IMG/VR virus record: IMGVR_UViG_3300028392_000029
Coordinates: 62,001 to 126,000 of that record
Length of the DNA: 64,000 bases
Direction: 5' to 3' (one strand)
Position 1 is the first letter of the stretch, and each line of letters opens with the position of its first letter. Under the pieces are notes generated by a model. That model made no database searches. It was not told the DNA's origin and saw nothing but the letters and a program-made list of their open reading frames with translations. A program made the position numbers and the translations under genes. Positions 12,901 through 35,814 of the stretch are shown here, in pieces.

Positions 12901-15900
12901 CAATGCTTAAATTTGTTTGTACACCAGCTAACGATCCTGTTTCAGCAGTTAATGAGTTGTCAATAATTTGGTTTGCTTGGTTGCCTGAACTAATACCGTT
13001 TAATGCTTGATAGTTACTGCTAGGAGCAGTATTTCCTAATACTGCGGCAAACAATGAATTTTTCAAGTAGTTGTAGGCTGTAACACTTTGTGAAACTTGA
13101 TAGCCAAAAGTTGTAGTAATTGGATTGCCAGTACTATTGAAATATGATTTGGCGGCATCGGTGTTCTTTTGATTACCGCCGTGGCCAATATCAAATACTG
13201 CGGCATCTACTAAGAGGCCAACATCACGCTCGCATTTTGTTGAGTTGTATACTAGTGATGCTGTGTTTGCTGTACTAGTTGCTGACAATGCCTGTGTAGT
13301 TCCACCATAGGCAGCACTAACAGAGAAGTGAGTCGCATCAACAATGTTTGAAACATAATATGTAACGCCAGCAGTAACACCGCCAGCAGTAACAGTAAAT
13401 GTCATTGGCATGTATAGTGACAAATAAGCTGTTGAGTTGCAGGTAAATGTACTGTTGGTTCCTGTGCCTGGTGAGCCACCTGTTGTTGCTGTGATAGTAA
13501 CTGTATAGTTATAGATGATAAAGTTTGTAACTTCCTTCATCATGAACTGTTTATTTTTAGCCAATAATAATTGTGCGCTGGTATTTAGATAACCGTTTTC
13601 AACTTGCAAGGCTGCATATCGAACAGTCTGCCATGGCTTGTCAAGTGTTTGTCCTTGACCATTACCTAATGCATCAGTGCCTGAAGGTGCCACATACACT
13701 ACGTTATTGATAACTCCAAAATATGCCCACTGGGGGGTAAGTGATCCGCCTACTGTGGATGCACGTAAAACCTGTCCGTCAGTACCGATAGGTAGTCGAG
13801 CCGGGCCTGCACCACCGTAATAAATTGTATCGCCTTGTGTAGTTAGTACATTGGTAATAGAACCTACTGCTAACACGTTCCAATATGTACCAGTAGTGTC
13901 TGCGTCAGGTCTGTTGCCTGATGCGGCAACGTGTGCTGTTACACAGATGTAACTGTTAGATCCAAAATTAACAGTATCACCTGCTACATATGCTGTAGAA
14001 GATGCCCAGCTTACTGCATAACCAACAGATGTAATACCACCAGTTTGAATTACGCCACCCGATACATTAGTAACTGTGATTAATAAATCGTTAGCTGGAC
14101 TGATGCCACCTAGTGCAGTTCCTAAGATCTTGATAGTATTAGTATTTGCATAGCCAGTTCCGCCACTAGCTACTGTAACAGTATAGTTTGTATTACTTAC
14201 GATAACATTAAACGTTGCACTAGTTCCAGAACCAACAACGTTAGTTCCGCTCAGTGCTGAGAAAGTTTGTGTTGATGGGTTCCAACGAATACCGCTGTTC
14301 AATCGTGACCAGTAACCAGTAAATGGAGGACTTGGGTTTGTAGTTCCAGTCATTGAGCCAGACGCCGTTGTTACTGTAAACGGTGTACCGCCTGAAACTG
14401 TACTAACTGTAAATTGAGTAGCACTGATAATAGTACTAACATAATAGGTTTGTGTTGTAGCTACTATATTACCAAAAGTTGTTCCGGTAAACACTAAGGG
14501 TAAGTTTGGTAGTAGGTTAGCTGTTGATCCAACGGTGATAGCATTGATACTTCCAGTAACTGTAGTTGAACTTACTGCCTGGCTTGAACTAATTGTAAAA
14601 CTTTTACCGGTAATTGTTACTGAAGATACACCTGATTGAGTCTGATTAACAGTCCATGATGTACCGCTACCTGCGGTGATATAAGTTCCGGCACTGATGT
14701 TAGTACCAGTCACGACCATACCAATCGAGATTGTTCCGGTAATTGCACCAGCAATATTTAAAGACTGACCAGTAATACTAGCAGTAGCCATCGTAGCTGT
14801 ATTCACTGTTACAATCGTAGTATTTGCCGCAATACTGCCGCCGGATAGTGTCATACCTGCACTGAATGTACCAGTTTGAGTTCCAGCCGCGGTCATTGTT
14901 GTACCGCTAACAAATGTCGCAGTGTTTGACGCAGTTGTGTTAGTTGTTGCTGTTGCTGTAACTGTTTGTATTGAGTTGTCTAATGTTGCAACATAAGTAT
15001 ATCCGCCTAATCGAACAACGTTACCAGTTTGATATGATGTTGCACCAACCCAGTCACCTAATAGTGTAAATCCAGTTGTAAATATTGACCAATCACTTGA
15101 TGTAGGAGATGGAGTGCTGGCAGTATTAACTGTGTTTGACACATATTGATATCCGCCATAGGTTACTATATCTCCGTTTTGGTATGTAGTACCACTTGAC
15201 CAACTATTATAGAACTGTAAACCTGCAATCCATACTGCCCAATTGGCTGTGGCAAATGCCGCTGACGAAGTATGTTGTGTTGTACAGATCCATAAATCGG
15301 CACCGTACTTTACAACGTCGTTTATTTTATAACGAACTGTGCTGCCACTCCATGTGCCTAGATATGTTATACCTTTGTGTAAAAAGTCCCACTTGTTTTG
15401 ATCATTTTCTAAACCTAGACTTGCAGTGGCTGCAGAAGTGTGTCCGGCATTACATACATAAGAAATACCACCGTATAATACAATGTCATTTATTCTGTAT
15501 CGATATGATGTTGCCCAGTTGCCGGTCCAAGCAAGACCTTTAACCCAAATATCCCAGTTAGAGATATCGTTTTCTAAACCTAAGGCAGTAGTACTAGCGG
15601 ATGTGTGTGCAGTATTACAAATATATGAATTTGCGCCATAGTTAACAATATCGTTAACTTTGTATTTTGTACTAACAGCCCAGCCTGCTGAAACCCAGTT
15701 AAACGAACTAGCATATAAATCCCACTTGCTTTGATCGTTTTCTAATCCCAGTAGAGTTGTGGCTGCCGATGTGTGTGGAGTATTACAAATATAAAGACGA
15801 CCGCCGTAACTAATTACATCGCGTAATTTGTAATATGTACTAATAGCCCAGGCACCAGTCCATGTAGAGCCGTCGCTAACTAATTGCCAATTACCGGATG

Positions 15901-16111: not shown

Positions 16112-19100
16112 TTAGTTATTAGCACTAAAACTGTTGGCAAACAACGAATGTGCCAACATCATACCGTTGATACCTGCGTTTGGTCCTTTGATATTCACCG
16201 TGGCTTTCATCAAAATCTGTTGCCCAACACTTGAATATATTTTCTGCGATCCGCCAAGTCCTACCGTACCTGCAATAACTGCACCTGTTTGTGCATTTGA
16301 TCCGCCACCGGCAATGTTTCGTGCTAGGTATGCTTTAACAGCTTTTTGTGTCGGAACTACTGTGTCACTATTTGCAACAAAATATGTATCCGTTGAAAAA
16401 CTAGTAATTGTCACAGAGTTTGCACCTGCACTTAACCCGCCAATGACTAATTTTGTCAGTCCGGCTAGACTAAATTGATTAGCTGAAATTGTTACAATAC
16501 CGCTGGCCTGTTGTACTGCAAACAGATTACCGACTTTAAAGTTGCCGTCCTGGTCTGTTGATGTTTGGAATACTCGACCACTATTGTTTTCAGCAATTTG
16601 TTTATAACTGGCCGCGGTCAATGGGTCAACATTTGGATAGTTTGTCTGTGCTTTATTACCAGTACCGATGTACAAGAAATCGTGCCCCGTAATTCTACAC
16701 TGGCTATATTTTAATCGAATACTAATAGTTGTCCCGTGGACTGGTGCTAGACTAATTGTTAATGCGGCTGCAATTTGGAAAAGATAGTTTCCACTACCTA
16801 ACGGAGTTATAACTACGACTCGGTATAAATTATTATTTCCGCTGATAGTTATGGCCGCTCCCGGAGTTGGGGATTGTGACAACCCACTGACATATAGATA
16901 CTGACTAGATTGCAATTGGTCGGCATAGCCGTCACCATTGACTGCAACTGTCGTAGTTGATGTTTGATAACCATTACCTCGGTTGAGGAATGTAGGATTA
17001 CCTAATACTCCTGTGGCTGTGCGGCATGCAGTTGTCACGGCTAGTGTTGCATTAGGATCATATATAGTAACTGTTGGAGTAGTGGCATAGCCGCCTCCTG
17101 GCTCATATATCTTTACCATACTGACTTTGCTATTAGCTACAATCACTCGTCCAATAGTAGTTGGTCCGGTAAGTACACTGGCAGCAGTGTTTGACGCTGT
17201 ACCGGCAATTGCCGTCCAAATTGGTGTAACTGCTCCGGCTATGCTTGTAGGATTTCCAAATGCTACAGCTGACCAAGGAGCACTTGTTGGCATTATCTGC
17301 GGGGTCCAATATAATCCATCTTGACTAGTGGCCGCTGTGCTGGTATTGGCCGCAACTGCAAAAAATAAACCTTGCCCGTATGTCACGGCTGTCCATGTCT
17401 GCGTACTAGGTAGAGCGTTTATTGTCCAAGTAATACCATCAAAGGAATATGCTGATTGATTTGTTTGGTCAATCGCTACAAATCTACCGTTACCCCATGT
17501 TACTGATATCCATGTACTGCTAGCTGGCAATGTACAAGGTGTCCATAGACTGCCGTTGTTAGTAGAATAAGCGGCATTGGCTGTTCCGGAAGCGACTGCA
17601 ACCCATGTACCAATAGATCCATATGCTATACTAGACCAGTTTCTTGAAGTCGGTAATGATCCGCCGTTAGCCCATGAAGTTCCACTAGTTGATGTAGCCG
17701 AATATGTGCTACCGTATGCAATCGCTACAAATGTCCCGTTACCAAATGCACAAGCTGACCAGTTGGCTGCAACCGGCAGTGTGCCACCTGCACTCCATGA
17801 TGCACCAGTATTTGATATACTTGTTAAATTACTTGAAGATGCGCCGCCTGCGACTGCTACAAAAAATCCTTGCCCAAATGCTAACGAAGTCCACGCTGTG
17901 CCGGCTGCCAGTGCTGTGGGATTCACAGTTGCTGCCAGCCAATTTTTACCGTCTGTAGATGTTGCCACACTACTCACTTGATCAATTGCAACAAATGTTC
18001 CTAATGCATAAATCATTGCGGCCCAAGTACTAGTTGATGGTAGTACTTGTAGTGTTCCTGTAAATCCGGGTGATGAAAAACTTACTTTTGGTTCAATGGA
18101 ATATACTGTGGTTGTATCAAGAGCCGGTGCAATAGGTTGCCCAGGCAGGATATTGTCAAAACCTACAGCTCCAATGTACGAGTTGCCATTGGCGGTATAC
18201 ACCGGAACTGGAACTCCTGCATATGTCCATGTGCCAGTTACTGAAGTTAGTGTGGCTTGACTTAAAGTAACAGTACTGATACCAGTACCTAATACTGTAG
18301 TACCTGCTTGTATTCCGGGGCCTGTTACAGCGCCACCTACAATAATACCAACTGTGCTGGCAATACCGCTGATGGTCTGTGTACTGTTACTTGTTCCAGT
18401 AAATGTTCCTGGTGCAGTCGCAGATAAAGTAATTTGATTCGTAAGAGTATTGTTAGTCAAGACCCAATAAGGTGTTCCCCAGCCAAGTGTTCCAATTACT
18501 CCCTGAGCAGTCGCTAACATGTTAGCAGTACCAGCATAAGTAGAGATATTTAAAATAGTACCAGTACCACCTAAACTAGTAGGTAATGCTGTTGAAATCT
18601 GAATTTTAGATCCGTTGATTGCATAAACAAAATAGCTAGTTCCGGGACTTACTCCGCCAAAGATAGTATTAAATGTCGGATTAACTGCAAATATAATGTT
18701 TTCTCCTACAAATATTCCCGATACACTTGCTAGTGTAAGACTATTGTCAACACTACTTGATGCAGTTACTGATGTAGTTTGTGTACTAGGCCCAAACATA
18801 ATGGCCTGTCCTACTTGTAAAGTGCTAGTAGATAAACATGTTACTGAATTGTTTGCATTACTTGTAGAGGTAACTGTTACTTGCGGGAAACTTTCTCTAC
18901 TAATATATGCGGCTTTTGTACTACTGTTATAATATTGTATATAGCCGTACTGCCCAACTCCTGTACCCGAAGTAATAATTAATCGCATACCAAAATATGT
19001 GGAAATAAGGTTCTGGTCGTTTGATGCTAATGTAACGTAAGTATTGGTGCCGCCGCCGGCTTGATTACCTGCTGTTAAGTAGCCGGCACCGCCAGCTGTT

Positions 19101-22000
19101 ATATCAGTGGGCCCAATAATTCTAGCTTCAAAGATGCCGCCATCTCTAAACTCATCGGCAACTGCAACTGCACCTGTACCAGCACCACTAAATGTATAGG
19201 TTGCTGTTGAATAATTTTGTCCGGCATTAGAGAATTCTAATCTAAGAATTTTGTTATTTGCTTGGCCGGCAAAGGCTGCTTGAATTTGAGCTTGTTGGCT
19301 ACGATTATTAACTGTTGCGGCTAGCGGGACTTCGGTAGTGTCATATCCTTCAGCAACTGTTCCATATGTGCCATACGAACTATTACCGTTGGTAGCACGA
19401 ATTCTTCCACCGGCCTCTGCTAGATATCCAATATGTCCATAATAGTTAAACACTGATACTAGTTCTGTTAGTGCGCTAGGGCCTGTACACCATGCGCCAA
19501 TTCCATCGCTAATAACTGTGGTAAAATCGTTAGCCACGATTGATCGATTGCCACCGTTATGCAGTGTACCGTCAATCTTTACACCGGTACATCCGGTACC
19601 AAACATCGTAACGTTTTGCGCATAAGGAGATTTGCTGGTAATTTGTACACTAGTATCATTTGGTCCGGATCCGGGATCTAAACTAACAAATGCTCCGCCA
19701 GTTGGACGTGAAGTGAGATATTGATTAATTGGTGTAAGGCCGCCAGTCAATCCTTGTAAGGTCATATTTCTAATGCCTGTGCCGTTACGACAAAGGAACA
19801 TATTAGATCCTTCGTAGCCGGCTGCTGGTTGCACCACTGTACCGCGTAGTTCATCGCCGCATAGCGCAACACCTGCTGGAATACTGATTGGAAGAATTTC
19901 AGTATAAGTTCCAGTCTTAATAAAAATTGTAGCAGGTCCGATAACGTTTGCACAAGCATAACGGATGCTAGCCCAAGGTGTATTCACAGTTGTTCCACGA
20001 GTAGGTAAATCAATTCCACTCATAGCAACATAATATACAGCACCAATAATACCAAAATTATTCCAAGCCGGGGCAATATTTGTGTTATCAACTACACCAT
20101 TGGTAACTGCCGCAGTTGCACGAAGTAGTTGTCCTTGTGTACCTATTGGTATCGCTTTATTAGCAGTACCGTAAGTTGGTATATCGCCATAAGTCTGGAT
20201 AGCTACCCATTGGTCTCCAGCGGCGTATCTGTTCCAATAGATTGATGCATTTTGTATAGACCCGCCTGTGGTAAATCCTGTAGCTAATGTTTCAAAACTA
20301 GCTGTAGTATTAGTACAGGTTATTACTGTATATGTTCCGTTGTAAGCTGTTGGGGTTGTGTTTGATACAATGATTAAATTTCCTGGAGTATACGGGCTAT
20401 TAGCTTGTGTAGGGAAGGTAACTGTTCCCACACCGGTTACTGTTGGGGTAGCAGTGAAGGTTGTTCCAGATAATGTCAGTGTTCCAAAATTAATGTCAGC
20501 AGTACCAAGTGCTCCAAGATATGTTGATGCTAGTGCAATTGTTGTACCATCAATAATATTACCAATATAATAAGTACCAGCTGTTAATGCTCCTGCTCCT
20601 GTACCTGCTACTACAAAAGTTTCACCTATGTGTAGTCCTGTTGATGAACTAACTGTAACATTTACTCCACTGGTTGCAGTGATACTTCCTGTGCGAGTTG
20701 TTAATGCTCCAGTACCCAAAGCACCGGTGATCATCAACGACGTAAATGTATTATCGATTAACGGTGTATTACTTGTAGTTGCATTATGTAATTGTTTGCA
20801 AACATATGCTGTGCCATTGTAAGTAACAAGGTCGCCTGGAGCATATGATGTGGTCAATGCCCAGGTATTTCTCCACTGTACACCAGGAATTAATAATTGC
20901 CATGCCGATGTATCAGTGGGATCATTACCGGTGTTATCAGCAATTGCAACATAAAGTTGCCCATCACGACGTACAATCTCACCTACTTTATATCCCGGAG
21001 TTGGACTTGCTACATATTCACCTCTGATATTGTAACTCTTAGATAAAAGAGTCCAATCGGTTGCATCAGTTGACGGAATGTTACCTTGATTATTTGTAGT
21101 TGCGCTTACATACTGATATCCGCCGTACACTACAACATCGCCAACTACATATGATGCACTAACACTCCAAGTACTAGAAAATTCTAAACCAGGAACATAT
21201 ATTGAAAAATTTGTTGTGCTAAAAGTAGTAGTTGAAGTATGAGGAATGTTACAAAACCAAAGATCTGCACCGTACTTGACTATGTCGTTAAGTTTGTAAC
21301 GAGTCACTGATGCCCAGTTAGTTTTAAAATCTATACCACTATGTACTATAGTCCACTTGCTTTGATCAACTTCTAATCCAGACGATACAGATACATTGCT
21401 AGTGTGTCCAGTGACACACTTGTACACTATGCCGCCGTAACGGACTACATCACCTACTTTATATTGAACACTAGTCGACCAATCTGTTTTCCAATCTGAA
21501 CCGTAGCTGACCACAGCCCAGTTTGATTGATTTGCTTCTAGCGTAGCGCCTGTTTGGTGTCCGGTAAGGCAACGATATAACGTTGAGCCGTAGCGAACAA
21601 TGTCGCCCTTTTTAAATCTAGCACTGGCTGTCCAATTTTTAGACCATTCATCAGCTAGAGCGTATATAATCCAGTTTGCTTGATTTGCTTCAAGTCCTAG
21701 TAGTGCTGTTGCCGCAGAAGTGTGCCCAGCGGTACAAATATAAATTACACCACCGTAGGTAACATAATCGCCAATGTTGTATAGGGTACCTACAGCCCAA
21801 ACACCTTTCCATGTGTATCCATCAAACCATAAAGTCCAGTTGGCCGAATCTGTATAAAAATTTGCGCTGGCAGTGTTAGCCGATGTACACACATAGGATT
21901 TTCCACCGTAGTTTATTACATCGTCTTTAGCATACACTGTGCTGGTTGTCCAAACACCGCGCCATGTAAATCGTATTCTACTTATTTTAAAATCAGCCAT
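16112..22000 (-). CDS. Modular tail fibre / adhesin-like virion protein (1962 aa), paralogue of 3929..16057
   Basis: Same N-terminal repeats (MADFKISRIRFTWRGVW vs MAEFKLGRIKFVWQGNW), same NRSIVANDFTT..SDGIG.WCTG core and C-terminal block. Confidence 0.8.
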   Translation of the reverse strand: MADFKISRIRFTWRGVWTTSTVYAKDDVINYGGKSYVCTSANTASANFYTDSANWTLWFDGYTWKGVWAVGTLYNIGDYVTYGGVIYICTAGHTSAATALLGLEANQANWIIYALADEWSKNWTASARFKKGDIVRYGSTLYRCLTGHQTGATLEANQSNWAVVSYGSDWKTDWSTSVQYKVGDVVRYGGIVYKCVTGHTSNVSVSSGLEVDQSKWTIVHSGIDFKTNWASVTRYKLNDIVKYGADLWFCNIPHTSTTTFSTTNFSIYVPGLEFSSTWSVSASYVVGDVVVYGGYQYVSATTNNQGNIPSTDATDWTLLSKSYNIRGEYVASPTPGYKVGEIVRRDGQLYVAIADNTGNDPTDTSAWQLLIPGVQWRNTWALTTSYAPGDLVTYNGTAYVCKQLHNATTSNTPLIDNTFTSLMITGALGTGALTTRTGSITATSGVNVTVSSSTGLHIGETFVVAGTGAGALTAGTYYIGNIIDGTTIALASTYLGALGTADINFGTLTLSGTTFTATPTVTGVGTVTFPTQANSPYTPGNLIIVSNTTPTAYNGTYTVITCTNTTASFETLATGFTTGGSIQNASIYWNRYAAGDQWVAIQTYGDIPTYGTANKAIPIGTQGQLLRATAAVTNGVVDNTNIAPAWNNFGIIGAVYYVAMSGIDLPTRGTTVNTPWASIRYACANVIGPATIFIKTGTYTEILPISIPAGVALCGDELRGTVVQPAAGYEGSNMFLCRNGTGIRNMTLQGLTGGLTPINQYLTSRPTGGAFVSLDPGSGPNDTSVQITSKSPYAQNVTMFGTGCTGVKIDGTLHNGGNRSIVANDFTTVISDGIGAWCTGPSALTELVSVFNYYGHIGYLAEAGGRIRATNGNSSYGTYGTVAEGYDTTEVPLAATVNNRSQQAQIQAAFAGQANNKILRLEFSNAGQNYSTATYTFSGAGTGAVAVADEFRDGGIFEARIIGPTDITAGGAGYLTAGNQAGGGTNTYVTLASNDQNLISTYFGMRLIITSGTGVGQYGYIQYYNSSTKAAYISRESFPQVTVTSTSNANNSVTCLSTSTLQVGQAIMFGPSTQTTSVTASSSVDNSLTLASVSGIFVGENIIFAVNPTFNTIFGGVSPGTSYFVYAINGSKIQISTALPTSLGGTGTILNISTYAGTANMLATAQGVIGTLGWGTPYWVLTNNTLTNQITLSATAPGTFTGTSNSTQTISGIASTVGIIVGGAVTGPGIQAGTTVLGTGISTVTLSQATLTSVTGTWTYAGVPVPVYTANGNSYIGAVGFDNILPGQPIAPALDTTTVYSIEPKVSFSSPGFTGTLQVLPSTSTWAAMIYALGTFVAIDQVSSVATSTDGKNWLAATVNPTALAAGTAWTSLAFGQGFFVAVAGGASSSNLTSISNTGASWSAGGTLPVAANWSACAFGNGTFVAIAYGSTYSATSTSGTSWANGGSLPTSRNWSSIAYGSIGTWVAVASGTANAAYSTNNGSLWTPCTLPASSTWISVTWGNGRFVAIDQTNQSAYSFDGITWTINALPSTQTWTAVTYGQGLFFAVAANTSTAATSQDGLYWTPQIMPTSAPWSAVAFGNPTSIAGAVTPIWTAIAGTASNTAASVLTGPTTIGRVIVANSKVSMVKIYEPGGGYATTPTVTIYDPNATLAVTTACRTATGVLGNPTFLNRGNGYQTSTTTVAVNGDGYADQLQSSQYLYVSGLSQSPTPGAAITISGNNNLYRVVVITPLGSGNYLFQIAAALTISLAPVHGTTISIRLKYSQCRITGHDFLYIGTGNKAQTNYPNVDPLTAASYKQIAENNSGRVFQTSTDQDGNFKVGNLFAVQQASGIVTISANQFSLAGLTKLVIGGLSAGANSVTITSFSTDTYFVANSDTVVPTQKAVKAYLARNIAGGGSNAQTGAVIAGTVGLGGSQKIYSSVGQQILMKATVNIKGPNAGINGMMLAHSLFANSFSANN

Positions 22001-22724: not shown

Positions 22725-24242
22725 TTATCCGAAAGTTATTGCTGCCGCAAATCCAATATCGTTAGCTTGCAGTGCATTAACACCGCTACTGCTACCAGCA
22801 ACAGATATCCAAGCTGACCCAGTCCATACTTCAACTAATTGAAGGTCGCTATTGTAGCGAATCATTCCAAGCTCAGAGTATGCTTGTAGAGGTCGGCTAC
22901 TACTTCCGCCAGTTGGAATTACTACACCATAGGTACCTGTGATTTTAGTATAACCGGTACCACTACCAGTGGCAGTCATTGCTGTTGCTGAAACTATTTG
23001 GCTGGGGTTCACATAGTATGTTCCGTTACCCCCGGTGCCTGTTGCTGGAGCAGTGATATAGGTCCCAGCGGTAACTGTATTTCCTGCTAGGATCATTCCA
23101 GTTACTATTGGCACTGAACCGGTAAAATTTGTTGCTGTTAAAATAATAGGGGTAGCGGTTACTGTTGTTCCCGATACTACCTGTGATGGAAATATTGTCC
23201 AAGTACTGGCAATGCTTGTGCCGGATCCTGTTAAGTTAGATACAATATATGTTCCAGCGGCAATTTGATTTCCCGTAATTACATATCCGGCTACTATACC
23301 TAATCCAGTTGGTGTGCTAGTAACACTTAATGTTGATCCGTTGATATTTCCTTGAAATGTGACTGCTGTTCCTAAACTAATTTCGCCAGTAAATGTTGCA
23401 ACTACCGAAGCAGTTCCGATAGTAGTAACAGCATTTGGGACTGTGTTGGTAATTGCACTATTATAAAATCGTAAATTGCCAGTTTGTAAACCGTAATTGT
23501 TACTAGTAGTAAAATTAATATCTGTATTAGGAGTATATGTACTAATCGTATTACCACTAATATCTAAATTAGCAGTTTTAATATCTGTAGCTGTTAGGTT
23601 AGTTACTGTGATATTTGTAAAATTAGCAGTATTAACATACAAGTTGTTCCACTGTAAATTACTCGAACCTAGATTATATGTACCAGTGGCCGCTGGTAAA
23701 ATATCGCTGTTAACTTCACCAGTGAATGTAATAGTGTCAGTTGTTTGATTACCTAAGGTGATATTTCCACTAGAGCCACCATCTGCACTGATATTACCAG
23801 TAACATGTAAATCACCATTGACCGTTGTATTGGCATTTATATTAATACTACCTGTGCCAGTAGTACTAATATTAATGTCAGTGTTTGTGCCCAAGCTGGC
23901 AATAGTGTTGCCAGTAATATTTAATTGTGTGCCAATAGACAAGCTACCCTGATAAACTACAGGATTAACTCCGCTTGGTAATAAATTAATTGTTGAACTT
24001 GAGCTACTAAGTGTATTGCTAGTTAAGGTAAAAGTAGCAATGTTAGATTGATTAGAAACGTATAAGTTTGTCGAGCGTGTTGTACCATTGACATCTAAGT
24101 CATAAGCCGGCGATGCTGTATTAATTCCAACACGGCCATTAACTACATCAAGATAGAGAAGGCTCGTCTCAAAAGCTAAATTCTGCCCGTTGCGGAGCAG
24201 ATTGTCTTTTAAGAGCGGCCCTGAAATTCGACCAACAGCCAT
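22725..24242 (-). CDS. Tail-fibre-related structural protein (505 aa)
   Basis: GRISGPLLKDNLLRNG..LYLDVVNGRVGINT N-terminus, ITLGNQTTDTITF motif, C-terminal PTG..RP...GMIRYNS motif; paralogue of 24387..25475. Confidence 0.7.
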   Translation of the reverse strand: MAVGRISGPLLKDNLLRNGQNLAFETSLLYLDVVNGRVGINTASPAYDLDVNGTTRSTNLYVSNQSNIATFTLTSNTLSSSSSTINLLPSGVNPVVYQGSLSIGTQLNITGNTIASLGTNTDINISTTGTGSININANTTVNGDLHVTGNISADGGSSGNITLGNQTTDTITFTGEVNSDILPAATGTYNLGSSNLQWNNLYVNTANFTNITVTNLTATDIKTANLDISGNTISTYTPNTDINFTTSNNYGLQTGNLRFYNSAITNTVPNAVTTIGTASVVATFTGEISLGTAVTFQGNINGSTLSVTSTPTGLGIVAGYVITGNQIAAGTYIVSNLTGSGTSIASTWTIFPSQVVSGTTVTATPIILTATNFTGSVPIVTGMILAGNTVTAGTYITAPATGTGGNGTYYVNPSQIVSATAMTATGSGTGYTKITGTYGVVIPTGGSSSRPLQAYSELGMIRYNSDLQLVEVWTGSAWISVAGSSSGVNALQANDIGFAAAITFG

Positions 24243-24386: not shown

Positions 24387-25475
24387 TTACCCGAAGATCA
24401 GGGACATTTCATTCATAATATCAGTAACATCAACTTCGGCTAGTACAGGACTTGTACCAATTGCTGGTATCCATCCTAAGGTACCATCATACACTTCAGT
24501 TTGAGAAATTGTAGAATTGTATCTGGTAGCGCCTACTTCTGGAGAACCTGGTCTCCCTGATGCTCCTGTAGAAGTTCCTACAGGAAGTACAACTCCGTTA
24601 GACCCTGTAAATTTTAAATAACCATTAGCAATATTGTTAAATGTCAGTGTTGAATTTGCAGAACTGCTATACAGCATAGTCAAAGTATTGCCATTAAATT
24701 TAAAATTATTATTTAAAATAACGCTACCGCTAGACGCTGATAAGATAGTATCAGCACTGGCATTACTGATAGTGTTTCCATTAAATAGAATATTTCCGCC
24801 AGTAATATTTGTTGGATTTAAAGAACTAACAGCAAGTGTTCCTCCTAATCCTCCTAAAATATTAACACCGTAAATATTTTTCCAACGTAGGCTATTAGAT
24901 CCTAGACTATAGGTATTTGTTGTAATGGGTAAAATATTACTATTAACTTCTGCTGTAATTGTAATAGTGTCAGTAGTTTGATTACCAAGTGTAATGTTAC
25001 CGTCAAGGGTGATATTACCGGTAGCGTGTAGGTCTCCAGTAACAGTAGTATTATTGTTTAGGTAAACATTGCCAGCGCCAATGGGACTAATTGAAATATT
25101 ATCGTTATTAATATAATCAACTATTGTGTTTCCACTAAGTGTTAATTTGTTAGTTTTAATAACAGGCGCAGTAATTGTTGGATTACTAGCCTGATTAGGA
25201 CTAATAGTAATTCCGCTAATAATATTTTGTATTTGATTAGTAGTAAACTCTAAATTTCCAAACTGTCCTAGAGTAGTAACATTTAAAGTCGGAGTGTTTA
25301 TTGCTCCAGCTGTTCCTGCAACGTTTAGATTTGATGTCGGACTAGAGGTACCAATGCCAACGTACTTGCCTGTAACATTTAAGTATAATAACTTAGTGTC
25401 AACAGCAAGATCAGAACCGTTACGTAGTAGATTATCTGCTAGTAACGGGCCGCCAATTCTTCCTATTTGAGCCAT
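24387..25475 (-). CDS. Tail-fibre-related structural protein (362 aa)
   Basis: GRIGGPLLADNLLRNG N-terminus, ITLGNQTTDTITI, PVGT...RP...GATRYNS. Confidence 0.7.
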   Translation of the reverse strand: MAQIGRIGGPLLADNLLRNGSDLAVDTKLLYLNVTGKYVGIGTSSPTSNLNVAGTAGAINTPTLNVTTLGQFGNLEFTTNQIQNIISGITISPNQASNPTITAPVIKTNKLTLSGNTIVDYINNDNISISPIGAGNVYLNNNTTVTGDLHATGNITLDGNITLGNQTTDTITITAEVNSNILPITTNTYSLGSNSLRWKNIYGVNILGGLGGTLAVSSLNPTNITGGNILFNGNTISNASADTILSASSGSVILNNNFKFNGNTLTMLYSSSANSTLTFNNIANGYLKFTGSNGVVLPVGTSTGASGRPGSPEVGATRYNSTISQTEVYDGTLGWIPAIGTSPVLAEVDVTDIMNEMSLIFG

Positions 25476-25484
25476 GCTAGCTCC

Positions 25485-26540
25485 TTATTGGTCAAAACCT
25501 AATAGCGCAATAACTACCTTGCCATAAGGCACCGGCGTACTAAATTTTAAGTAATAACTGTTGTTTGAAATTGATTGGCTAGCTTCAGCAATCGTTATAG
25601 CAGTATTAACTGCAATAGTTCCAGTTGGTACATGATTCATAGAAATACTAGTCAATGCTCCTGTGTTTGGATCAGTTATTGCAGAACCAGTAAGAAGGGC
25701 CCCGCTATAGATATTAGATCCGCTAACAGTTGCGCCAGTAAGAGGTACAGATGGGAATACCGCAGGAGTGCTACCACTTGCAGTAACTGATCCTCCGTTT
25801 TGATATGTTCCCGGATTAGTTGTTAGTGCGTAAGTAACTGTAGTTGCTGTTGAACCAGTGACTGTAAATACCCCGTTAAATGCACTTGATGCTTGTCCAG
25901 TAGATAAAATACCTTCAACTGTTATTGTTGCACCAATTGCAAATCCAGGTTGTGAAGACGTAGTATTTGACATTGTAACCGTAGCAACATTACTAGTCCA
26001 ACTTGCCGTGGTTACATTTAAACTTGTGTTAAAATATAATATTGCCGAACCTGTGCTAGCGGCTACGCTAAGAGATCCGGTATATGTTTCTGTCGGCAAT
26101 GTAGGATTTTGCACTACTGTATAGTTAAGGCTACTAAGTTGAATAACGTTTTCAACTACAACAATAATGTTTTGTCCGCCAAATGTTGAGTTTGTACTAT
26201 CTACATTTGTTGGGTTATAGGCGGAGTTTAAAGGACCAAAATATGTGTTATTGCTATCACCTGCACCTAAATTCTGTTGTACAATTGTTCCAGATTCTTT
26301 AAATCTTAAACTGCGCCATTTACTACTTTGATAAATTTCCAGTTGTCCACCAGCTGTTATGTCAGTGTTATATCGTACCATTCCGTTTACTGGATTGGCC
26401 GGACGTTGGGCAGTAGTACCAGTTGGTACTATTACATTATTAGTGCTTCCCAAAGTTACCTGACCCGTGGCGGTATTGGCGGATACATCAAATCCTGTAA
26501 CTGCCCTACGATTAAGGTTAACTTGTTTTAAGAATCTCAT
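25485..26540 (-). CDS. Virion structural protein (351 aa)
   Basis: VPTGTTAQRP...GMVRYNT fibre motif near the N-terminus and a Thr/Gly beta-module in the middle. Confidence 0.65.
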   Translation of the reverse strand: MRFLKQVNLNRRAVTGFDVSANTATGQVTLGSTNNVIVPTGTTAQRPANPVNGMVRYNTDITAGGQLEIYQSSKWRSLRFKESGTIVQQNLGAGDSNNTYFGPLNSAYNPTNVDSTNSTFGGQNIIVVVENVIQLSSLNYTVVQNPTLPTETYTGSLSVAASTGSAILYFNTSLNVTTASWTSNVATVTMSNTTSSQPGFAIGATITVEGILSTGQASSAFNGVFTVTGSTATTVTYALTTNPGTYQNGGSVTASGSTPAVFPSVPLTGATVSGSNIYSGALLTGSAITDPNTGALTSISMNHVPTGTIAVNTAITIAEASQSISNNSYYLKFSTPVPYGKVVIALLGFDQ

Positions 26541-28883: not shown

Positions 28884-28970
28884 TTTGTTTTCTCCTTGTA
28901 GAAAAACGGCGTTCTAGGCCGTACGCGGTTGGATTTCCGCATAAAATCCACACCATGTGGATCATACATT
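28884..28970 (-). promoter_or_regulatory. Structured 5' leader of 27861..28883 with a terminator-like hairpin before the RBS
   Basis: Minus strand: AUCCACA-UGG-UGUGGAU; UAUGCGG-AAAUCCAA-CCGCGUA; ACGGC-CUAGAAC-GCCGU-UUUU; then AAGGAG. Confidence 0.5.
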
Positions 28971-28971
28971 G

Positions 28972-28979
28972 TATTTATA
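28972..28979 (-). promoter_or_regulatory. T4-type late promoter TATAAATA
   Basis: Exact consensus upstream of 27861..28883; further minus-strand TAAATA boxes in intergenic gaps at 3591, 16084, 24367, 33745, 34060 and 40925. Confidence 0.7.
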
Positions 28980-29721
28980 CGTAAGTGATTCGCATAGCTA
29001 CGTTGTCAATATATGCCGTATCAGTGTGTGGTGTAAGAACGTTGCTTCTAAAGGCTATTGCAACACCAAAGTTTACGTTAATTGTATCTATTAACTGTAT
29101 TGGACTATTCCATAAGTTTGTAGGAGATCCATAAATTTTATAGTTGTCTACTCCAGGATCTGCAATATTATCGCCGACTAGTTGTCCGTTTAGAACTAGT
29201 TGCACAACATAGTCTTGAACTCTAGATGCTCTGATAGAATCTATTTGAACTTCAATCCCCAGCAATGTTGATCCGTTGGGAGAAAATGCAAAGTTAGTAA
29301 ACCATAACTGGCTGGTTATTGTGGCAAATCGCTCTTGCCATAGACCTGATATTGTATGTAAAGGTTTAGCACTAGTGGCATACTTTGACACACCTCTACC
29401 AATGCTGGCTGCTGTATCTAGCCAGCTTATACTGTTATCCGTACTTACTTGAGTTACCAAGTTTGAAACAAGAAATTTGGTAGTTGTTGGTATAGGTGCT
29501 GGCGGTACTACCAGCACTGTTAGTACTAGTACTGAAAGTTTTTGAATATTATAATCATCTAATGTTCGACCAGGTTCTAAAATAGTACCATTGTAAGTTA
29601 ATTGTGGTTGTCCGGCAGGTGGACCTATTCTATCCTGTATTTTTGCTAGGACTCCTTCGATAGAATCAGAAGACTCTACATCAATTGTGATAGTAGACGG
29701 TACCTGAACAAATATTTGCAT
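28975..29721 (-). CDS. Ubiquitin-like domain (aa 1-~68) fused to a virion-type beta-sandwich domain; possible capsid decoration protein
   Basis: MQIFV...[21 protein letters not shown]...[14 protein letters not shown]: 40 of 76 positions identical to canonical ubiquitin in my manual alignment; no LRLRGG; Pro-rich linker; located directly after the major capsid gene. Confidence 0.85.
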
Positions 29722-29739
29722 AATAAATTCCTGTTAGTA

Positions 29740-29752: not shown

Positions 29753-29776
29753 AAAAACGCCCCGAAGGGCGTTTTT
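29753..29776 (-). terminator. Rho-independent terminator after the major capsid gene
   Basis: Minus strand AAAAACGCCC-TTCG-GGGCGTTTTT: perfect stem, C(UUCG)G tetraloop, U-tract. Confidence 0.9.
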
Positions 29777-29804: not shown

Positions 29805-30980
29805 TTACTGGAACTTAACGTTACCTGAAGTAATACCAACTAGACCTAAATAGTCAGCGGCGTTACCTAAGCTACTTGCTGTGTTCGACAACTCAACATA
29901 ACCATAACGTGTCATGAATGATACGACTGGCTCAAATGTTGATGGATCTAAAACAACACCACTGCTCATCAATGGAATGTATGGGCAATAGAAAGCAGGA
30001 GCATCAGATTCTGAAGAACCTTTGTAACCTACTAGGATGCTTTGTGAATCGCTAGCATATGAGTTAACATATACTTTCATAGCATTGTTCAATGTACCAA
30101 CAAACTTAGTGTTTGTAGGTGCTTCGAATGTACCTTCTGTTGTACGAGCAAATGCGCTAGTAGTAGCAGATTGTAGAATTGTCAATGCAAATGGGCTAAC
30201 CACAGCGTAGTTACCAGCACCACGACGTGTACGTTGAGCGATCAAGTTAGCAACGCGGTTGATCATAACTGCCAAGGCAGCATGCTCATCACCCACGAAT
30301 GTTGCTGTACCAGATACTGACGCTTGGTCGTATGTGTATAAAGCTGAACCAGCTAATGATTGTAGGCTAGCTAGAATCTCTTGGTCGATCTCAGCAGTAA
30401 TTTCTTGTGCTAGAGCAGCCATGATTTCAGCTTCTACGTCAATACCTTGTTGTGCTTGTGCATCTTGAGCTGATTCAAATGTCCAGCGAGCTGACAATTT
30501 ACGTGTCTTCGCTTCAACAGTTTGTTTCAAGATTTGAATGCTTAATCTGTTACCAGCTTGACCTTCTAAAGTAGCTGTTGAGCTAGCCTTAGGAGTTGCG
30601 TCAGTTGTGTTACCAGAGTAAGAAGCCGCAATCTTGAATGGGCTCAATGCCTCTTCACCAGCTACTACACCAGCGCCCGATGATGAATCAGCGTAGCGAA
30701 CACGTAGAGTGTGAATTTGTCCTACTGGACCAGTCATTGGTTGTACGCCTAACAACTCGTTAGCAATAACGGTTGGCATTACGCGGCGGATTACTGGAAG
30801 AATCACGCGATTTAGTGTTGCAACGTTACCGGCAGAAGTGGCACCAGCAGTAGCGGATTCTGCAAGATACTTACGAGTATTCTCAAGAGCCACGCCCATT
30901 ACTGATTTTTTAGTGCCTGATAGGCCTTCTAAAAGTGCTTCTTTAGTTTCTGCCCAACGTCCGTTTAATAGTTCTGACAT
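29805..30980 (-). CDS. gp23: Major capsid protein (T4 gp23-like)
   Basis: LPVIRRVMPTVIANELLGVQPMTGPVGQI, VEAKTRKLSARWTFESAQD, AFYCPYIPL, FMTRYG motifs. Confidence 0.95.
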   Translation of the reverse strand: MSELLNGRWAETKEALLEGLSGTKKSVMGVALENTRKYLAESATAGATSAGNVATLNRVILPVIRRVMPTVIANELLGVQPMTGPVGQIHTLRVRYADSSSGAGVVAGEEALSPFKIAASYSGNTTDATPKASSTATLEGQAGNRLSIQILKQTVEAKTRKLSARWTFESAQDAQAQQGIDVEAEIMAALAQEITAEIDQEILASLQSLAGSALYTYDQASVSGTATFVGDEHAALAVMINRVANLIAQRTRRGAGNYAVVSPFALTILQSATTSAFARTTEGTFEAPTNTKFVGTLNNAMKVYVNSYASDSQSILVGYKGSSESDAPAFYCPYIPLMSSGVVLDPSTFEPVVSFMTRYGYVELSNTASSLGNAADYLGLVGITSGNVKFQ

Positions 30981-30992
30981 TTAAATTTCTCC

Positions 30993-32096
30993 TTAAAATT
31001 TTAGTCCAGCAAGTTTGCGAATATCAATGATATTGGCATCTGACTCGCTACTATGATTGGTGTTGGAAATTTTATTTCCTGTGACTTCTTTTGCCTCTAC
31101 AAGTGCCTGTTTCTTCTGCGGAGCTCTTCCAGTGTTACCAGAGATAACTGATGGTAGATACTTTTCAAAACTTTCGTTTAGACGTTCTGTTTTCACAGAC
31201 TCCATTAATTCGCCCATGATTGAACGTTGCTCATTGTTTAGAGGAGCTAGTAATTCATTCATGATTGCTTTTCTTTCTTGACTCTCTTTAAGAGCACGGA
31301 TGGTAGCTTCTTTACTTTCTAATATTTGTTCTGCTTTTGCAACGGCCTGTGCGGCTTCTTGCATTGCCAAATCTTTCAAGTCTATAACTTTGAGTAATTT
31401 TGCTGTTTCCGATTTTTCATTTAGGTAACTTGTAGAATATTCTGCGGCAAAAGCTTCGAATAATTTACGTCCAAAATCTGCGCGACGAGCGGCTTCAATG
31501 TCTTCTTTCAGTGCTGTAATTTCAGAGTTTAAATTCTGAGTTACTACTGATTCAACCATCTTAGCGGCACGGGTAACAAATTCTTGTTGTACCTTCTTGA
31601 TTTCTTTACGACCTTCACGGACTAAGCGAACTTTCGTTTCAGCTAAGTCTTGTTTGTCTTTGTAAAACTCTGTGATTTCTTGAGCTAGAGCCTCAACTAC
31701 GAATTGTTCTAGTTTACCAAATTTACTTGCCATAACCACCTGATCTTCGTGTAACTCACGAACTTCAGAAGCTAACTGACGTGTAACAAATTCCTTCATT
31801 ACTTCAGTGTCTTTCTTCATCTTCTTAGCATATTTGACTTTCATCTCAGCTAATTGATTGCGGTCATCTGCAAACTCGACAATCTCAACAGCTAGTTGTT
31901 CAGAGATCATACGATCTACTGCTTCAACCATTGTGTTTTTGTCGTGTTCGTATTTTTGTGCAAACTCTTCACGTAATTGTTCAGCTACTTGTGTACGAGC
32001 TTCGTTAATACGACTCTCGAAAGCGGCTTCAATTGACTCCTTGATCTCTTCAGAAATCATGCTGTTTTCAAATAAACCTTTTAGTGCATCCAACAT
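30993..32096 (-). CDS. gp22: Prohead core scaffolding protein (gp22-like)
   Basis: Glu/Lys-rich coiled coil located between protease and capsid genes, as in T4 gene order. Confidence 0.8.
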   Translation of the reverse strand: MLDALKGLFENSMISEEIKESIEAAFESRINEARTQVAEQLREEFAQKYEHDKNTMVEAVDRMISEQLAVEIVEFADDRNQLAEMKVKYAKKMKKDTEVMKEFVTRQLASEVRELHEDQVVMASKFGKLEQFVVEALAQEITEFYKDKQDLAETKVRLVREGRKEIKKVQQEFVTRAAKMVESVVTQNLNSEITALKEDIEAARRADFGRKLFEAFAAEYSTSYLNEKSETAKLLKVIDLKDLAMQEAAQAVAKAEQILESKEATIRALKESQERKAIMNELLAPLNNEQRSIMGELMESVKTERLNESFEKYLPSVISGNTGRAPQKKQALVEAKEVTGNKISNTNHSSESDANIIDIRKLAGLKF

Positions 32097-32109: not shown

Positions 32110-32745
32110 TTATTGGAGTTTGTTTATTATTGCTAATAAACTCTCTTTGAGATATTTCTGTGCTTTAGGGTCGCCCTTGACCTCTTGCGCTATGCGTAAG
32201 GAACTTAATCCGCCTCGACTATTCATCAAGTGTTCATAAATTGGTGTAGGGTATGCTCCAGGAGCACTAGGTTGAGCTACCATATCTACTGTGATAATCT
32301 CAAAATCTGATACTTCTCCTGATCCGTCTTCTTTTACGTTGCCGGATCCGCGACTTGAAACTCCTAACTTGACTCCGCTTTCCAACATTGTCTTGATAAG
32401 TTGTCCCATAGGGGTTGGTAAAATTTTCAGTTTACCGTAACCGTTAGGACCGTCCATCCACATGTTTGTTATCATGTGTGACACACGGTCCAGGTTAATT
32501 TTTAGATCATCTGGATGATCTACTTCTCCGAGAACTGAATAACCGTTCTGAATCTGATCGTTTAGGGTTTTGACAGCCTTGCCAATCTCATTAACAGGGT
32601 AAACACGCTGGTTAGCGTTACGTATACCGCCCTGGATACAAATCCCGGACATGTATAAGTTTTTCCCATCTTTGTCATCAGATTCAACGATCATTTTTGC
32701 TTCGTTGAAACTGAGATTCTCTCGGAGGTATAACATATTTTTCAA
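32110..32745 (-). CDS. gp21: Prohead protease (gp21-like)
   Basis: IQGGIRNANQRVYP, LGEVDHP, GVSSRGSG, DMVAQPSAPGAYP motifs. Confidence 0.92.
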   Translation of the reverse strand: MKNMLYLRENLSFNEAKMIVESDDKDGKNLYMSGICIQGGIRNANQRVYPVNEIGKAVKTLNDQIQNGYSVLGEVDHPDDLKINLDRVSHMITNMWMDGPNGYGKLKILPTPMGQLIKTMLESGVKLGVSSRGSGNVKEDGSGEVSDFEIITVDMVAQPSAPGAYPTPIYEHLMNSRGGLSSLRIAQEVKGDPKAQKYLKESLLAIINKLQ

Positions 32746-34062: not shown

Positions 34063-35814
34063 TTATGCTGCCGGTGGTGGAGGAGGTGCACCTGGTTGTG
34101 CTGGAGCTCCGCCAACTGCTCCTTCTCCGCCTGTTTCTGCATCTTGCATATCTTCCGGAGCATCCATATCACCTGCGGCGCCTAAATCACCCTCTATACC
34201 AGCGGCACTCAGGCCTGCTGAACGTAATTCACCAGCGGCATCTGTATGATTAGGTTGTCCTTTGCCAGCTTCTTCAGCCCACATGCGTTCGTTTTCTGCT
34301 ACTTCTTCGTCTGTTAAGCCTAAAAAACGTTTAAGAGCAAAGCGTTTTGATACAAACGGCACAGCTTGAATAGTATTAAATGTATTAATACGCTCTGTAT
34401 CCATAGCCGCTTGTCGACTTGATGCAAAGTTCATTGGAGGATTAAACTGTAACTCAAATAGATTCGCATCTAAGTTAAGCCCTTTACTCTCCATATACAT
34501 TTTAAACTCTTCATCAAACACTGCTGTGATAAGACTCTGTAGTCTTTCACAGTATTTGTTAAAGCGTAGCTCTTGAATATAAGCTGTTCCTACTCTGCCG
34601 TCGTTGAAACTTGCTTGCGAATCGTCCGCGCCAGTAGGTAAGTAACTGCTAGGAATCCGCAAACCTCTAAAAAGTTTGTTCGTAAAGTATTTAAGGTCAT
34701 CAATTTCACCTAAATTAGTACCGCCGGGCAGTGTTTCTACTTTAGAACCACGTCCTTCCGCTGTTGTTGGGAAGAAATAGTCTTCATTGATTGACAATGG
34801 GTTATACGCACTGTCAATAACATTCTGCCCGCCACCCGATTGGCTAGGAATACGGCGCTGATGGATTTCATTTTTAACACGTTCTACGAATGCCATGGCC
34901 AAATGGCTTGGCATGTTGCCCACATCAATGTGAAATACCCTGCGTTCTGGCGCACGTTGTATACGATAGATTAAAATTGCATCTTCAAGCAACTCTTTCT
35001 GTTTGTAAACTTTAAAAATGTTTTCAAGTAAACTGTTACCAAACGGATAATTTTGATCTAGACCTTCCGACAGACTTAAATGTATCATGTGTTTAGCATC
35101 AACAGCATTTTCTTTCTGATTTAATCCAAAACGACCACCACCACCACCAGCTGAATACGGGCCTGATGCACCTTTTCCGCTACTACCTTGACCTAAATTG
35201 CCGCTTACTCCTTGAGTTCCGCCTGAACCTGCACGTGGACTCACTGTAGGGGTAATCATTGTAGCAACTAAATTTTCAAAATTAGGTGCTAGATCTTTAA
35301 CCACATACTGTTCAGGTTTCTTGCCTTCGCTTTCATTTACAATAACTTTGACAATGTTTGCTGGATCTACGTAAGACCATTTTTGATTTTCTGGATCGCG
35401 AATAAAAAAACTATCGCCATACTTGAATACGTTGCGCACAATACGAAATATTCTAGTATCAAACTGCTGTAGCTTATTCCATTGCTGTAGGTATTCACCT
35501 AAAATCTTAATTTCACTGTTAGTAGCTTTGTGGCGCCATTTAACTGAGAATGGACTTTTGTTATCTTTTACTTTTTGTGTGCAAAACTCTGCAAGAATAT
35601 CTAGTGCGGCATTAACTTCAGGATCTGAATCCATTACTTCGTATTGGCTATAACGTTCAACACGATTTGGACTACCTGTATAGATATCAGGTAGATAACT
35701 TGAATAGTTTGTTTGTGCGGGCCCTGGTCTAGATCCGCTGTTGTTTGCACCAGAGATAGGCCCTAATAGTTGCCCATTAACTGCTACTGGTGTGAAATAT
35801 TTTTTCCAACTCAT
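34063..35814 (-). CDS. gp20: Portal vertex protein (T4 gp20-like)
   Basis: MDSDPEVNAALD, EDAILIYRIQRAPERRVFHIDVGNMP, EDYFFP, LPGGTNLGEIDDLKYF motifs. Confidence 0.95.
   Translation of the reverse strand: MSWKKYFTPVAVNGQLLGPISGANNSGSRPGPAQTNYSSYLPDIYTGSPNRVERYSQYEVMDSDPEVNAALDILAEFCTQKVKDNKSPFSVKWRHKATNSEIKILGEYLQQWNKLQQFDTRIFRIVRNVFKYGDSFFIRDPENQKWSYVDPANIVKVIVNESEGKKPEQYVVKDLAPNFENLVATMITPTVSPRAGSGGTQGVSGNLGQGSSGKGASGPYSAGGGGGRFGLNQKENAVDAKHMIHLSLSEGLDQNYPFGNSLLENIFKVYKQKELLEDAILIYRIQRAPERRVFHIDVGNMPSHLAMAFVERVKNEIHQRRIPSQSGGGQNVIDSAYNPLSINEDYFFPTTAEGRGSKVETLPGGTNLGEIDDLKYFTNKLFRGLRIPSSYLPTGADDSQASFNDGRVGTAYIQELRFNKYCERLQSLITAVFDEEFKMYMESKGLNLDANLFELQFNPPMNFASSRQAAMDTERINTFNTIQAVPFVSKRFALKRFLGLTDEEVAENERMWAEEAGKGQPNHTDAAGELRSAGLSAAGIEGDLGAAGDMDAPEDMQDAETGGEGAVGGAPAQPGAPPPPPAA

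Follow-up and report, generated by a model that had tools for sequence, protein, structure and literature searches.

Ubiquitin is the textbook eukaryotic modifier, and BfUbb of Bacteroides is the only studied true ubiquitin-family protein outside eukaryotes and their viruses. BfUbb belongs to PF00240, is ~60% identical to eukaryotic ubiquitin, is secreted and non-cytoplasmic, and lacks the terminal Gly-Gly (PMC3463472, PMC11467351). It is a free protein of ~76 residues with a signal peptide, is imported via the TonB-dependent SusCD-type transporter ButCD, and acts as an antibacterial toxin on a periplasmic peptidyl-prolyl isomerase (PPIase) (PMC11467351); it also inhibits eukaryotic ubiquitination in vitro (PMC3463472), and its authors found that other residues for interaction with the eukaryotic pathway are kept (PMC3463472, PMC11467351). 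Here we describe a ubiquitin domain built into a 248-residue protein of a tailed phage, encoded on a stretch of 64,000 nucleotides (the window; positions 62,001 to 126,000 of IMG/VR virus record IMGVR_UViG_3300028392_000029). Like BfUbb, this domain falls in PF00240, is encoded outside eukaryotes and lacks Gly-Gly; unlike BfUbb, it lacks a signal peptide and the residues I44, R42 and R72, and it is part of a longer protein, fused to a 170-residue domain and encoded in a phage structural module.

Other systems resemble the phage gene in part. The ubiquitins of baculoviruses and entomopoxviruses are virus-encoded members of PF00240, and the baculovirus protein is found on the virion; they are free proteins of ~75% identity that keep Gly-Gly and have a host conjugation system accessible to them. 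UBA52, RPS27A and giant-virus fusions also place ubiquitin N-terminal to an unrelated protein, with further partners on IMG/VR giant-virus contigs, whereas their RLRGG junction is cleaved by deubiquitinases to give conjugatable ubiquitin and the phage junction would be uncleavable by that route. Decoration and head-fibre proteins such as lambda gpD, SPP1 gp12, phi29 gp8.5 and T4 Hoc are small, dispensable and variable, with adhesion-type folds and capsid-adjacent genes; the present protein shares with them the character of a small accessory capsid-adjacent gene, with no demonstrated relation in sequence or fold. Lambda and T1 TAPI consist of an N-terminal beta-grasp domain, a linker and a small C-terminal domain, the first being ThiS/MoaD-like with a conserved C-terminal Gly and a neighbouring JAB peptidase predicted to release it; TAPI is absent from the mature tail (PMC1779556). 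What the two systems have in common is an N-terminal beta-grasp domain in a protein of phage morphogenesis; the differences are that the phage domain is PF00240, has no conserved C-terminal Gly and no JAB gene found with it, and has capsid-module genes as neighbours.

We read the phage ubiquitin as a cap that cannot be conjugated and that serves, outside the cell, as a structural element or adaptor on a binding protein of the virion surface, with a probability of about 0.6. The observations behind this reading are the fusion itself, the pattern of residue loss, selection, presence/absence polymorphism and the recombinational exchange of both halves. The initial annotation had treated positions 29494-29721 as a stand-alone phage ubiquitin with a new C-terminus; they are instead the first 76 codons of a 248-codon open reading frame (ORF; protein P0001) that runs from 29721 to 28975 on the minus strand. 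Codon 76 is not followed by a stop, and in translation VLVVPP continues in frame into APIPTTTKF and 170 more residues. Position 29494 is thus no gene end and falls inside a Pro-rich linker, such that those coordinates mark a domain and not a protein. Because ubiquitin is the N-terminal domain of the fusion, the missing Gly-Gly is a junction rather than an end. The gene and its immediate surroundings comprise:

29753..29776, no strand assigned: palindromic terminator-like hairpin in the gap between capsid gene and fusion gene, 10 pairs, with a T-run on both strands
29728..29732, minus strand: Shine-Dalgarno-like AGGAA, 6 nt upstream of the ATG, from sequence reading
29506..29721, minus strand: ubiquitin-fold domain, codons 1-72, from the PF00240 match, alignment to ubiquitin structures, the order of elements in an AlphaFold2 (AF2) model and the core
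29488..29505, minus strand: Pro-rich linker PPAPIP, codons 73-78, in place of the Gly-Gly end of ubiquitin, from translation and alignments
28978..29487, minus strand: C-terminal domain of ~170 residues from the conserved TTT-x-F motif on, a predicted beta-sandwich of galactose-binding-like or carbohydrate-binding-module (CBM) type
28975..28977, minus strand: stop codon of the fusion ORF, from translation
28906..28922, minus strand: terminator-like hairpin directly 3' of the fusion gene

Residues 4-68 match PF00240 with 46.5 bits against a cut-off of 25.4 (E 3e-12), and the best-matching families of the N-terminal domain are ubiquitin and Rad60-SLD. At the genome level, PF00240 scored 49-55 bits in three phage records, with a single ubiquitin copy. 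Solved ubiquitin chains align over residues 1-68 (E ~7e-15), with the beta1-beta2 loop shorter by 2 residues, and the AF2 model shows the beta-grasp order of strand-strand-helix-strand-strand-short helix-strand, at a predicted local distance difference test (pLDDT) of only 57-79. The window domain is ~55% identical to eukaryotic ubiquitin, and canonical ubiquitin overall is 54-59% identical to the phage ubiquitin part (reference: protein P0117, residues 1-76).

In the window, the replacement of LRLRGG by VLVVPP, with P-P for G75-G76 and therefore no di-Gly, was confirmed as first described, together with the loss of five lysines (K6Q, K11S, K27L, K33R and K48T) and the retention of K29 and K63. 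The hydrophobic patch is likewise gone (L8 with the shortened beta1-beta2 loop, I44T, H68V and V70T), R42Q, R72L and R74V accompany it, and the 14-residue segment at positions 50-63 is intact. We then compared homologues obtained by a word search with residues 78-248, which returned 53 protein clusters, 7 of them carrying ubiquitin: type A (P0001 and P0093) and type B (P0004, P0021, P0154, P0158 and P0159, ~50% identical to type A, with a linker 4 residues shorter in the alignment). The lysine pattern, correct for the window, does not extend to the family, as some homologues have K11, K27 and K33, and type B has R or S in place of K63. Gly at position 75/76 is found in none of the seven, and the junction is hydrophobic and Pro-rich in all of them. 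Relative to canonical ubiquitin, the I44 patch is identical in 0/28 cells and the tail at 71-76 in 5/42, and R42, R72 and K48 are each kept in 0/7. Identity rises to 10/21 in the I36 patch, 12/21 in the F4 patch and 22/28 in the D58 patch (50-59 loop), and 15 core positions are identical in 95/105 and hydrophobic in 105/105 cells. The early remark that core and 50-63 segment were nearly intact also holds. This pattern lies far outside chance. Three derived states, T22S, A46N/Q and Q49I, are common to 7/7. The loss is surface-specific, with the I44 face and tail gone and helix 1 and the 50-59 loop conserved. Without Gly-Gly, R42, R72 or the I44 patch the domain is predicted to be non-conjugatable, and the initial annotation's view of a repurposed, non-conjugatable protein stands, with no E1, E2 or JAB in the records examined (see below). 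Its further suggestion that selection had kept one face does not follow, since the conserved helix-1 and 50s-loop residues also hold the fold and 7-8 sequences cannot separate the two.

Q49I, present in 7/7 phage ubiquitins, creates I-L-E at codons 47-49 (window 29575-29583), an (L/I)-x-E motif. This is the cleavage consensus of T4-type prohead proteases, one of which is encoded 2.4 kb upstream. Cleavage there seems unlikely because the motif sits within a folded domain. Prohead-protease processing at the junction was set aside: the junction has no (L/I)-x-E, and the only such motif is inside the fold.

Selection on the module was assessed from the pairwise ratio of nonsynonymous to synonymous substitution rates (dN/dS), a check named beforehand in the initial annotation. 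Values were 0.11-0.46 in the ubiquitin part and 0.05-0.33 in the C-terminal domain, and reading frames were intact in 8 ubiquitin-fused variants from many samples. The ubiquitin part is under purifying selection that maintains the fold; given these ratios and the intact frames, the module is not decaying. A captured eukaryotic or giant-virus ubiquitin that drifts neutrally after an accidental fusion would account for an identity of only ~55% to a highly conserved protein and for the loss of all canonical functional surfaces. We regard such a remnant as scarcely credible, as it is already contradicted by dN/dS well under 1 in every usable pair and runs against the 8 intact frames, the wholly hydrophobic core, the retention of the module while the C-terminal domain behind it was replaced, and a base composition that is fully phage-like (GC 38%, GC at third codon positions 17%).

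Ubiquitin is an optional part of this gene. It is absent in 46/53 clusters, most of which are stand-alone proteins of ~170-190 residues that start M-(T/I)-TT-x-F, and this start coincides with the end of the linker in the fusion. An empty site was found on contigs of 79 kb and 164 kb (L102 and L103), where a 171-residue gene starting MITTNF has no ubiquitin. Between these contigs and the window, nucleotide identity is 90-96% in the end of the capsid gene, the hairpin and the downstream gene, and the window has in addition a ribosome-binding site (RBS; AGGAA), 72 ubiquitin codons and the linker, in frame ahead of TTTKF. The hairpin at 29753..29776 is kept in L103, whose start is the TTT-x-F motif and which has no AGGAA; the Shine-Dalgarno-like sequence thus arrived along with the ubiquitin module. 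The distribution suggests that the gene with the beta-sandwich only is the ancestral state at this post-capsid locus.

The C-terminal half is exchanged as well. The window and a 96% variant of P0001 that is also ubiquitin-fused (L009) are 85-100% identical to L002 (P0093) at the end of the capsid gene, across the ubiquitin part and over the last ~30 codons of the fusion gene, whereas identity falls to 26-56% in codons 79 to ~235, and the drop sets in exactly at the PTTT junction. For synonymous divergence (dS), the ubiquitin part gives 0.02-0.15, and the C-terminal domain is saturated. In the C-domain tree the ubiquitin-fused rows are scattered, which requires 4-5 or more changes, and a single clade is rejected (approximately unbiased test, p-AU 0.0002). 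In the best ubiquitin tree the phage sequences group as one clade (SH-aLRT 87), and a single phage clade is not rejected in the joint tree (p-AU 0.81). These results show that ubiquitin is a recombining N-terminal module and that both halves have been exchanged by recombination. Two independent captures, for types A and B, are the less likely alternative; one clade is the best or an unrejected topology, and T22S, A46N/Q and Q49I are common to both types. No free-standing ubiquitin of the phage type came up in a word search limited to the ubiquitin part.

A module of this kind could act only in cis, as a folding or solubility tag for the beta-sandwich while the particle is assembled, with no role in the finished particle and perhaps trimmed later, comparable to eukaryotic ribosomal-protein fusions. 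Ubiquitin fusions raise yield and solubility in bacteria, which have no deubiquitinases, and this general knowledge fits the N-terminal position, the short linker, the dispensability evident from the empty site, the same ubiquitin ahead of very different C-terminal domains and the variation of surface residues other than those that determine the fold. However, 46/53 clusters fold without ubiquitin, removal is unlikely at a junction that has neither Gly-Gly nor (L/I)-x-E, and T22S, A46N/Q and Q49I in 7/7 homologues suggest more than generic fold retention, such that we consider a mere tag unlikely, if credible.

The cap reading depends also on what the C-terminal domain is. Its AF2 model is confident (pLDDT 94), and comparison with CBM32, discoidin and fucolectin structures over 117-134 residues gave VIA Z-scores of 8.0-9.7, although such Z may mean only a common arrangement. 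Template modelling (TM) scores were 0.75-0.84 in the Atlas to domains of Bacteroidota surface proteins secreted by the type IX secretion system (T9SS), M14 peptidases and Dit-type phage tail proteins, and 0.65-0.72 in BFVD to domains of large phage tail proteins; Foldseek against the PDB returned only weak CBM matches (E ~2e-3). No sequence match to the domain was found in Pfam, PHROG or PDB. A profile search of 1.8 billion representatives matched 3921 proteins, many of the matches being repeats in giant proteins that also bear Ig, cadherin-like and laminin-G domains. From the models, the domain would have a galactose-binding-like beta-sandwich fold, and we read it as an unnamed putative surface-binding module. 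In some homologues (P0143-P0152) one loop carries insertions of 100-210 residues after a conserved FTNF motif. The domain is hypervariable, in that it has been exchanged entirely (L002:351-1172 versus window 28978-29487) between otherwise 85-100% identical phages. Exchange and loop insertions together are what one would expect to see in a surface protein that binds receptors or is antigenic. Capsid adjacency, the CBM-type fold, loop insertions and cassette exchange thus point to a virion-surface binder, and because most relatives work without ubiquitin, the beta-sandwich must carry its own attachment.

The best matches of the module by identity were found among bacterial proteins. A word search with the ubiquitin part gave best identities of 62-64% to P0404, P0406, P0418 and P0412 (canonical ubiquitin, 54-59%), all four of which have a ubiquitin without Gly-Gly. 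P0404 and P0418 carry signal peptides; TIGR04174 confirmed an IPTL-CTERM sorting domain in P0406 and P0418 (E 4e-12), and P0404 and P0412 have a similar hydrophobic, basic tail with no significant match to TIGR04174. The four proteins and the phage domains have T22S, R42I/Q, I44T, Q49V and V70T in common, and the junction reads SVPT in the bacterial form and SVPTTT or PIPTTT in the phage proteins.

Prokaryotic species were then scanned with one genome each, and 80 loci (L182-L261) were kept and 72 ORFs extracted; the scan indicated at least 514 bacterial loci with a signal peptide and ubiquitin in many phyla. Cultured strains among them include Paracidovorax valerianellae, two Pseudomonas species, Saccharibacillus, Dyella humi, Rhodopirellula maiorica, Novipirellula rosea, Ruminococcus albus 8, Pseudovibrio denitrificans and Neptunomonas antarctica. 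As a rule, the signal peptide in the 72 ORFs has Ala as its last residue, immediately ahead of MQIF, and the ubiquitin is followed either by a sorting signal similar to IPTL- or PEP-CTERM or by extracellular domains of 100-1400 residues. Gly-Gly is absent in 69/74 scored bacterial ubiquitin domains. In the searchable literature only BfUbb and its Bacteroides homologues were found and no description of bacterial signal-peptide-ubiquitin fusions, so this layout appears largely undescribed.

As in the phage protein, ubiquitin comes first in the mature bacterial proteins (P0418, L182-L261) and is followed by a hydrophobic or Pro-rich linker instead of Gly-Gly, and many have the changes at T22S, R42, I44, Q49 and V70 and the SVPT-form junction. 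They differ in their Sec signal peptide, their location in cellular genes, an identity to canonical ubiquitin of mostly 75-95% and C-terminal partners unrelated to the phage beta-sandwich. The phage ORF begins directly at MQIF, with no Sec signal peptide and with the RBS and hairpin upstream. The missing signal peptide lowers its membership in the exported bacterial ubiquitins and not the analogy, as a lytic phage protein would not need one. By that analogy the phage domain would count as an exported ubiquitin: its N-terminus is PF00240 without Gly-Gly, and an extracytoplasmic fate is suggested by its position in the structural module. Bacterial rows (P0412 and P0418) are the closest non-phage neighbours of both phage types in the joint tree, without branch support, and the identity of phage domains to bacterial, eukaryotic and giant-virus ubiquitins differs by 0-7 points. 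The phage module may derive from the bacterial exported-ubiquitin family and not directly from a eukaryote.

This relationship raises the possibility that ubiquitin itself is a recognition ligand, in which a virion copy of a secreted bacterial ubiquitin docks on an outer-membrane importer or surface protein, by analogy with BfUbb and ButCD. The nearest tree rows and the derived residues shared with exported ubiquitins speak for it, as do the exchange of the module among phages like a host-range cassette and the behaviour of BfUbb, which enters through a SusCD-type transporter and binds a PPIase in the periplasm (PMC11467351). Receptor and host would both be hypothetical, however; the BfUbb system is known only in Bacteroides, and exposed residues differ strongly between types A and B (~50% identity), all of which makes a ligand role distinctly improbable. 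Equally improbable is its extension, that the virion shows a mimic of the secreted ubiquitin of its community alongside an interchangeable sugar-binding-like domain as a two-part host-recognition device. Were that true, a eukaryote-derived fold would be a recognition currency among bacteria and phages, and the bacterial signal-peptide-ubiquitin proteins would belong to the same unrecognised extracellular "ubiquitin" biology.

Loss of Gly-Gly with retention of the fold also has the look of a dead-end inhibitor, and BfUbb blocks eukaryotic ubiquitination in vitro (PMC3463472). An intracellular decoy could in this way jam a host defence based on conjugation of ubiquitin-like proteins (Ubls), of Bil type or of the Cap2 type in the cyclic-oligonucleotide-based antiphage signalling system (CBASS), or another ubiquitin-binding factor. 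Yet the domain is fused to a structural-module protein, after the capsid gene and between terminator-like hairpins, not in an early or anti-defence region, and it has lost R42 and R72, which are needed for E1 recognition. Moreover, bacterial defence Ubls are, as a matter of general knowledge, only remote relatives of PF00240 ubiquitin. We judge a decoy very unlikely. Searches for E1 (ThiF-type, PF00899), E2 (UBC-type, PF00179) and prokaryotic JAB (PF14464) found none in the 165-, 223- and 103-kb records of this phage and near relatives (G000-G002), which are 28-60% complete, the E2 search being without a positive control.

Under the preferred cap reading, the ancestral gene after the major capsid gene would encode only the ~170-residue galactose-binding-like beta-sandwich, and in a minority of phages a ubiquitin module with its own RBS would have been joined in frame at the second or third codon. 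Ubiquitin would stay attached, the junction having neither Gly-Gly nor a protease motif. The beta-sandwich would do the binding as a virion-surface accessory protein, presumably a capsid decoration or fibre-associated adhesin, and ubiquitin at the free N-terminus would form a very stable, quick-folding exposed cap or adaptor. This is the same role that it seems to have in the bacterial proteins, where the signal peptide is cut exactly before M1 of a ubiquitin without Gly-Gly.

Several points weigh against this reading. Presence/absence polymorphism means that phages can do without the module, as would also be seen if its benefit were weak or conditional. Only 7-8 ubiquitin-fused sequences are available, most pairwise dS values are near saturation, and the conserved helix-1 and 50s-loop residues may reflect fold constraint and not a binding surface. 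The virion location is inferred, and with no homologue in a cultured phage no proteome or cryo-EM map applies. Neither identity nor tree names the donor, 72 columns being insufficient, and with records 28-60% complete the absence of E1 and E2 from the genome is not proven. Finally, the full-length AF2 model, built from 11 sequences, is poor (pLDDT 59), such that domain packing is unreadable and the model gives no geometry between both domains; a predicted complex of the ubiquitin domain with the C-terminal domain scored 0.00 in both runs, without controls, which is neither for nor against binding.

A tailed phage with a ubiquitin lacking Gly-Gly built into a structural-module protein is a new setting for exported-ubiquitin homologues, and natural near-isogenic phages with and without the module make its contribution directly testable. 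The hundreds of bacterial genes suggest a second, conjugation-independent career of ubiquitin as an extracellular building block, and the bacterial signal-peptide-ubiquitin family may interest more widely than the phage gene. Both bear on gene movement among eukaryotes, giant viruses, bacteria and phages in lakes and on the usefulness of the ubiquitin fold apart from its chemistry.

The neighbours of the fusion gene are all on the same strand and form a T4-type head module:

34063-35814, minus strand: portal
32110-32745, minus strand: prohead protease S77
30993-32096, minus strand: scaffold
29805..30980, minus strand: gp23-like major capsid protein, the upstream neighbour of the fusion gene (PF07068, E 3e-96)

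The capsid protein is 68-73% identical to those of the Rak2-like jumbo phages Sinorhizobium Phosso, Vibrio 2.275.O, Pectobacterium CBB and Cronobacter GAP32, and we place the source phage among the freshwater myophages of the Rak2-like jumbo group. The 165-kb IMG/VR virus record that contains the window is estimated to be 45% complete, and the same phage is found on a 223-kb contig. The exact 248-residue protein occurs on 10 contigs, with variants from IMG/VR, ENA, JGI and Logan assemblies, and DNA of the locus is present in at least 7 freshwater metagenome runs. Where the contig suffices, a conserved order is seen: portal, small ORF, ~307 residues, protease, scaffold, capsid, C-domain gene, ~324 residues and ~322 residues. 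Downstream of the fusion gene, a long series of genes without annotation follows that look structural, among them ORFs of 1962 and 4042 residues.

Among the cultured phages in INPHARED, no DNA or protein match was found to the fusion gene or to two downstream genes, and a profile search with filters off found no homologue of the C-terminal domain near the capsid genes of CBB, Phosso and Vibrio 2.275.O. The slot right after the capsid gene holds unrelated small hypothetical genes that differ among these three (L099, CBB; L100, Phosso; L101, Vibrio 2.275.O), and the head module of Phosso is interrupted by other genes. Because its contents differ in every cultured Rak2-like relative, the post-capsid slot is a hot spot of gene turnover. 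Tail-fibre genes also lie near the capsid gene in cultured Rak2-like relatives.

Scans of viral and metagenome contigs were full of giant-virus and eukaryotic ubiquitins (loci examined: L008-L087 and L102-L104). Six IMG/VR loci (L041, L047, L055, L056, L062 and L076) have a canonical ubiquitin with intact RLRGG fused to an HMG-box-like basic domain, and another (L057, IMG/VR) has canonical ubiquitin, again with RLRGG intact, fused to a histone-H4-like sequence. Several of these contigs are labelled as giant-virus metagenome-assembled genomes, and the fusions are of the cleavable type with unusual partners.

Three giant ORFs were observed in the part of the window with structural genes, at 3929-16057 (minus strand, 4042 residues), 16112-22000 (minus strand, 1962 residues) and 55119-63998 (plus strand, at least 2960 residues, running off the window end); the beta-sandwich domain was sought in all three and found in none. 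Exact-match Logan unitigs from four freshwater runs stop on either side of 29429-29483, just past the junction of ubiquitin and C-terminal domain. None of the listed unitigs bridges the junction, which proves nothing, and the longer assemblies L004, L008, L009 and L002 do bridge it; the breaks are compatible with variants that co-exist and diverge at this place. The 42-base stretch coding for GRTL-DYNIQK (29539-29580) cross-matches unrelated canonical ubiquitin genes of the same samples. Three further, neighbouring minus-strand genes, at 22725-24242, 24387-25475 and 25485-26540, encode proteins of 505, 362 and 351 residues with a common segment of ~60 residues that matches the same PHROGs of unknown function (25721, 2803 and 38538) and is C-terminal in two of the proteins and N-terminal in the third. 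The three may be paralogues, belonging to fibres or branches, that share an anchor.

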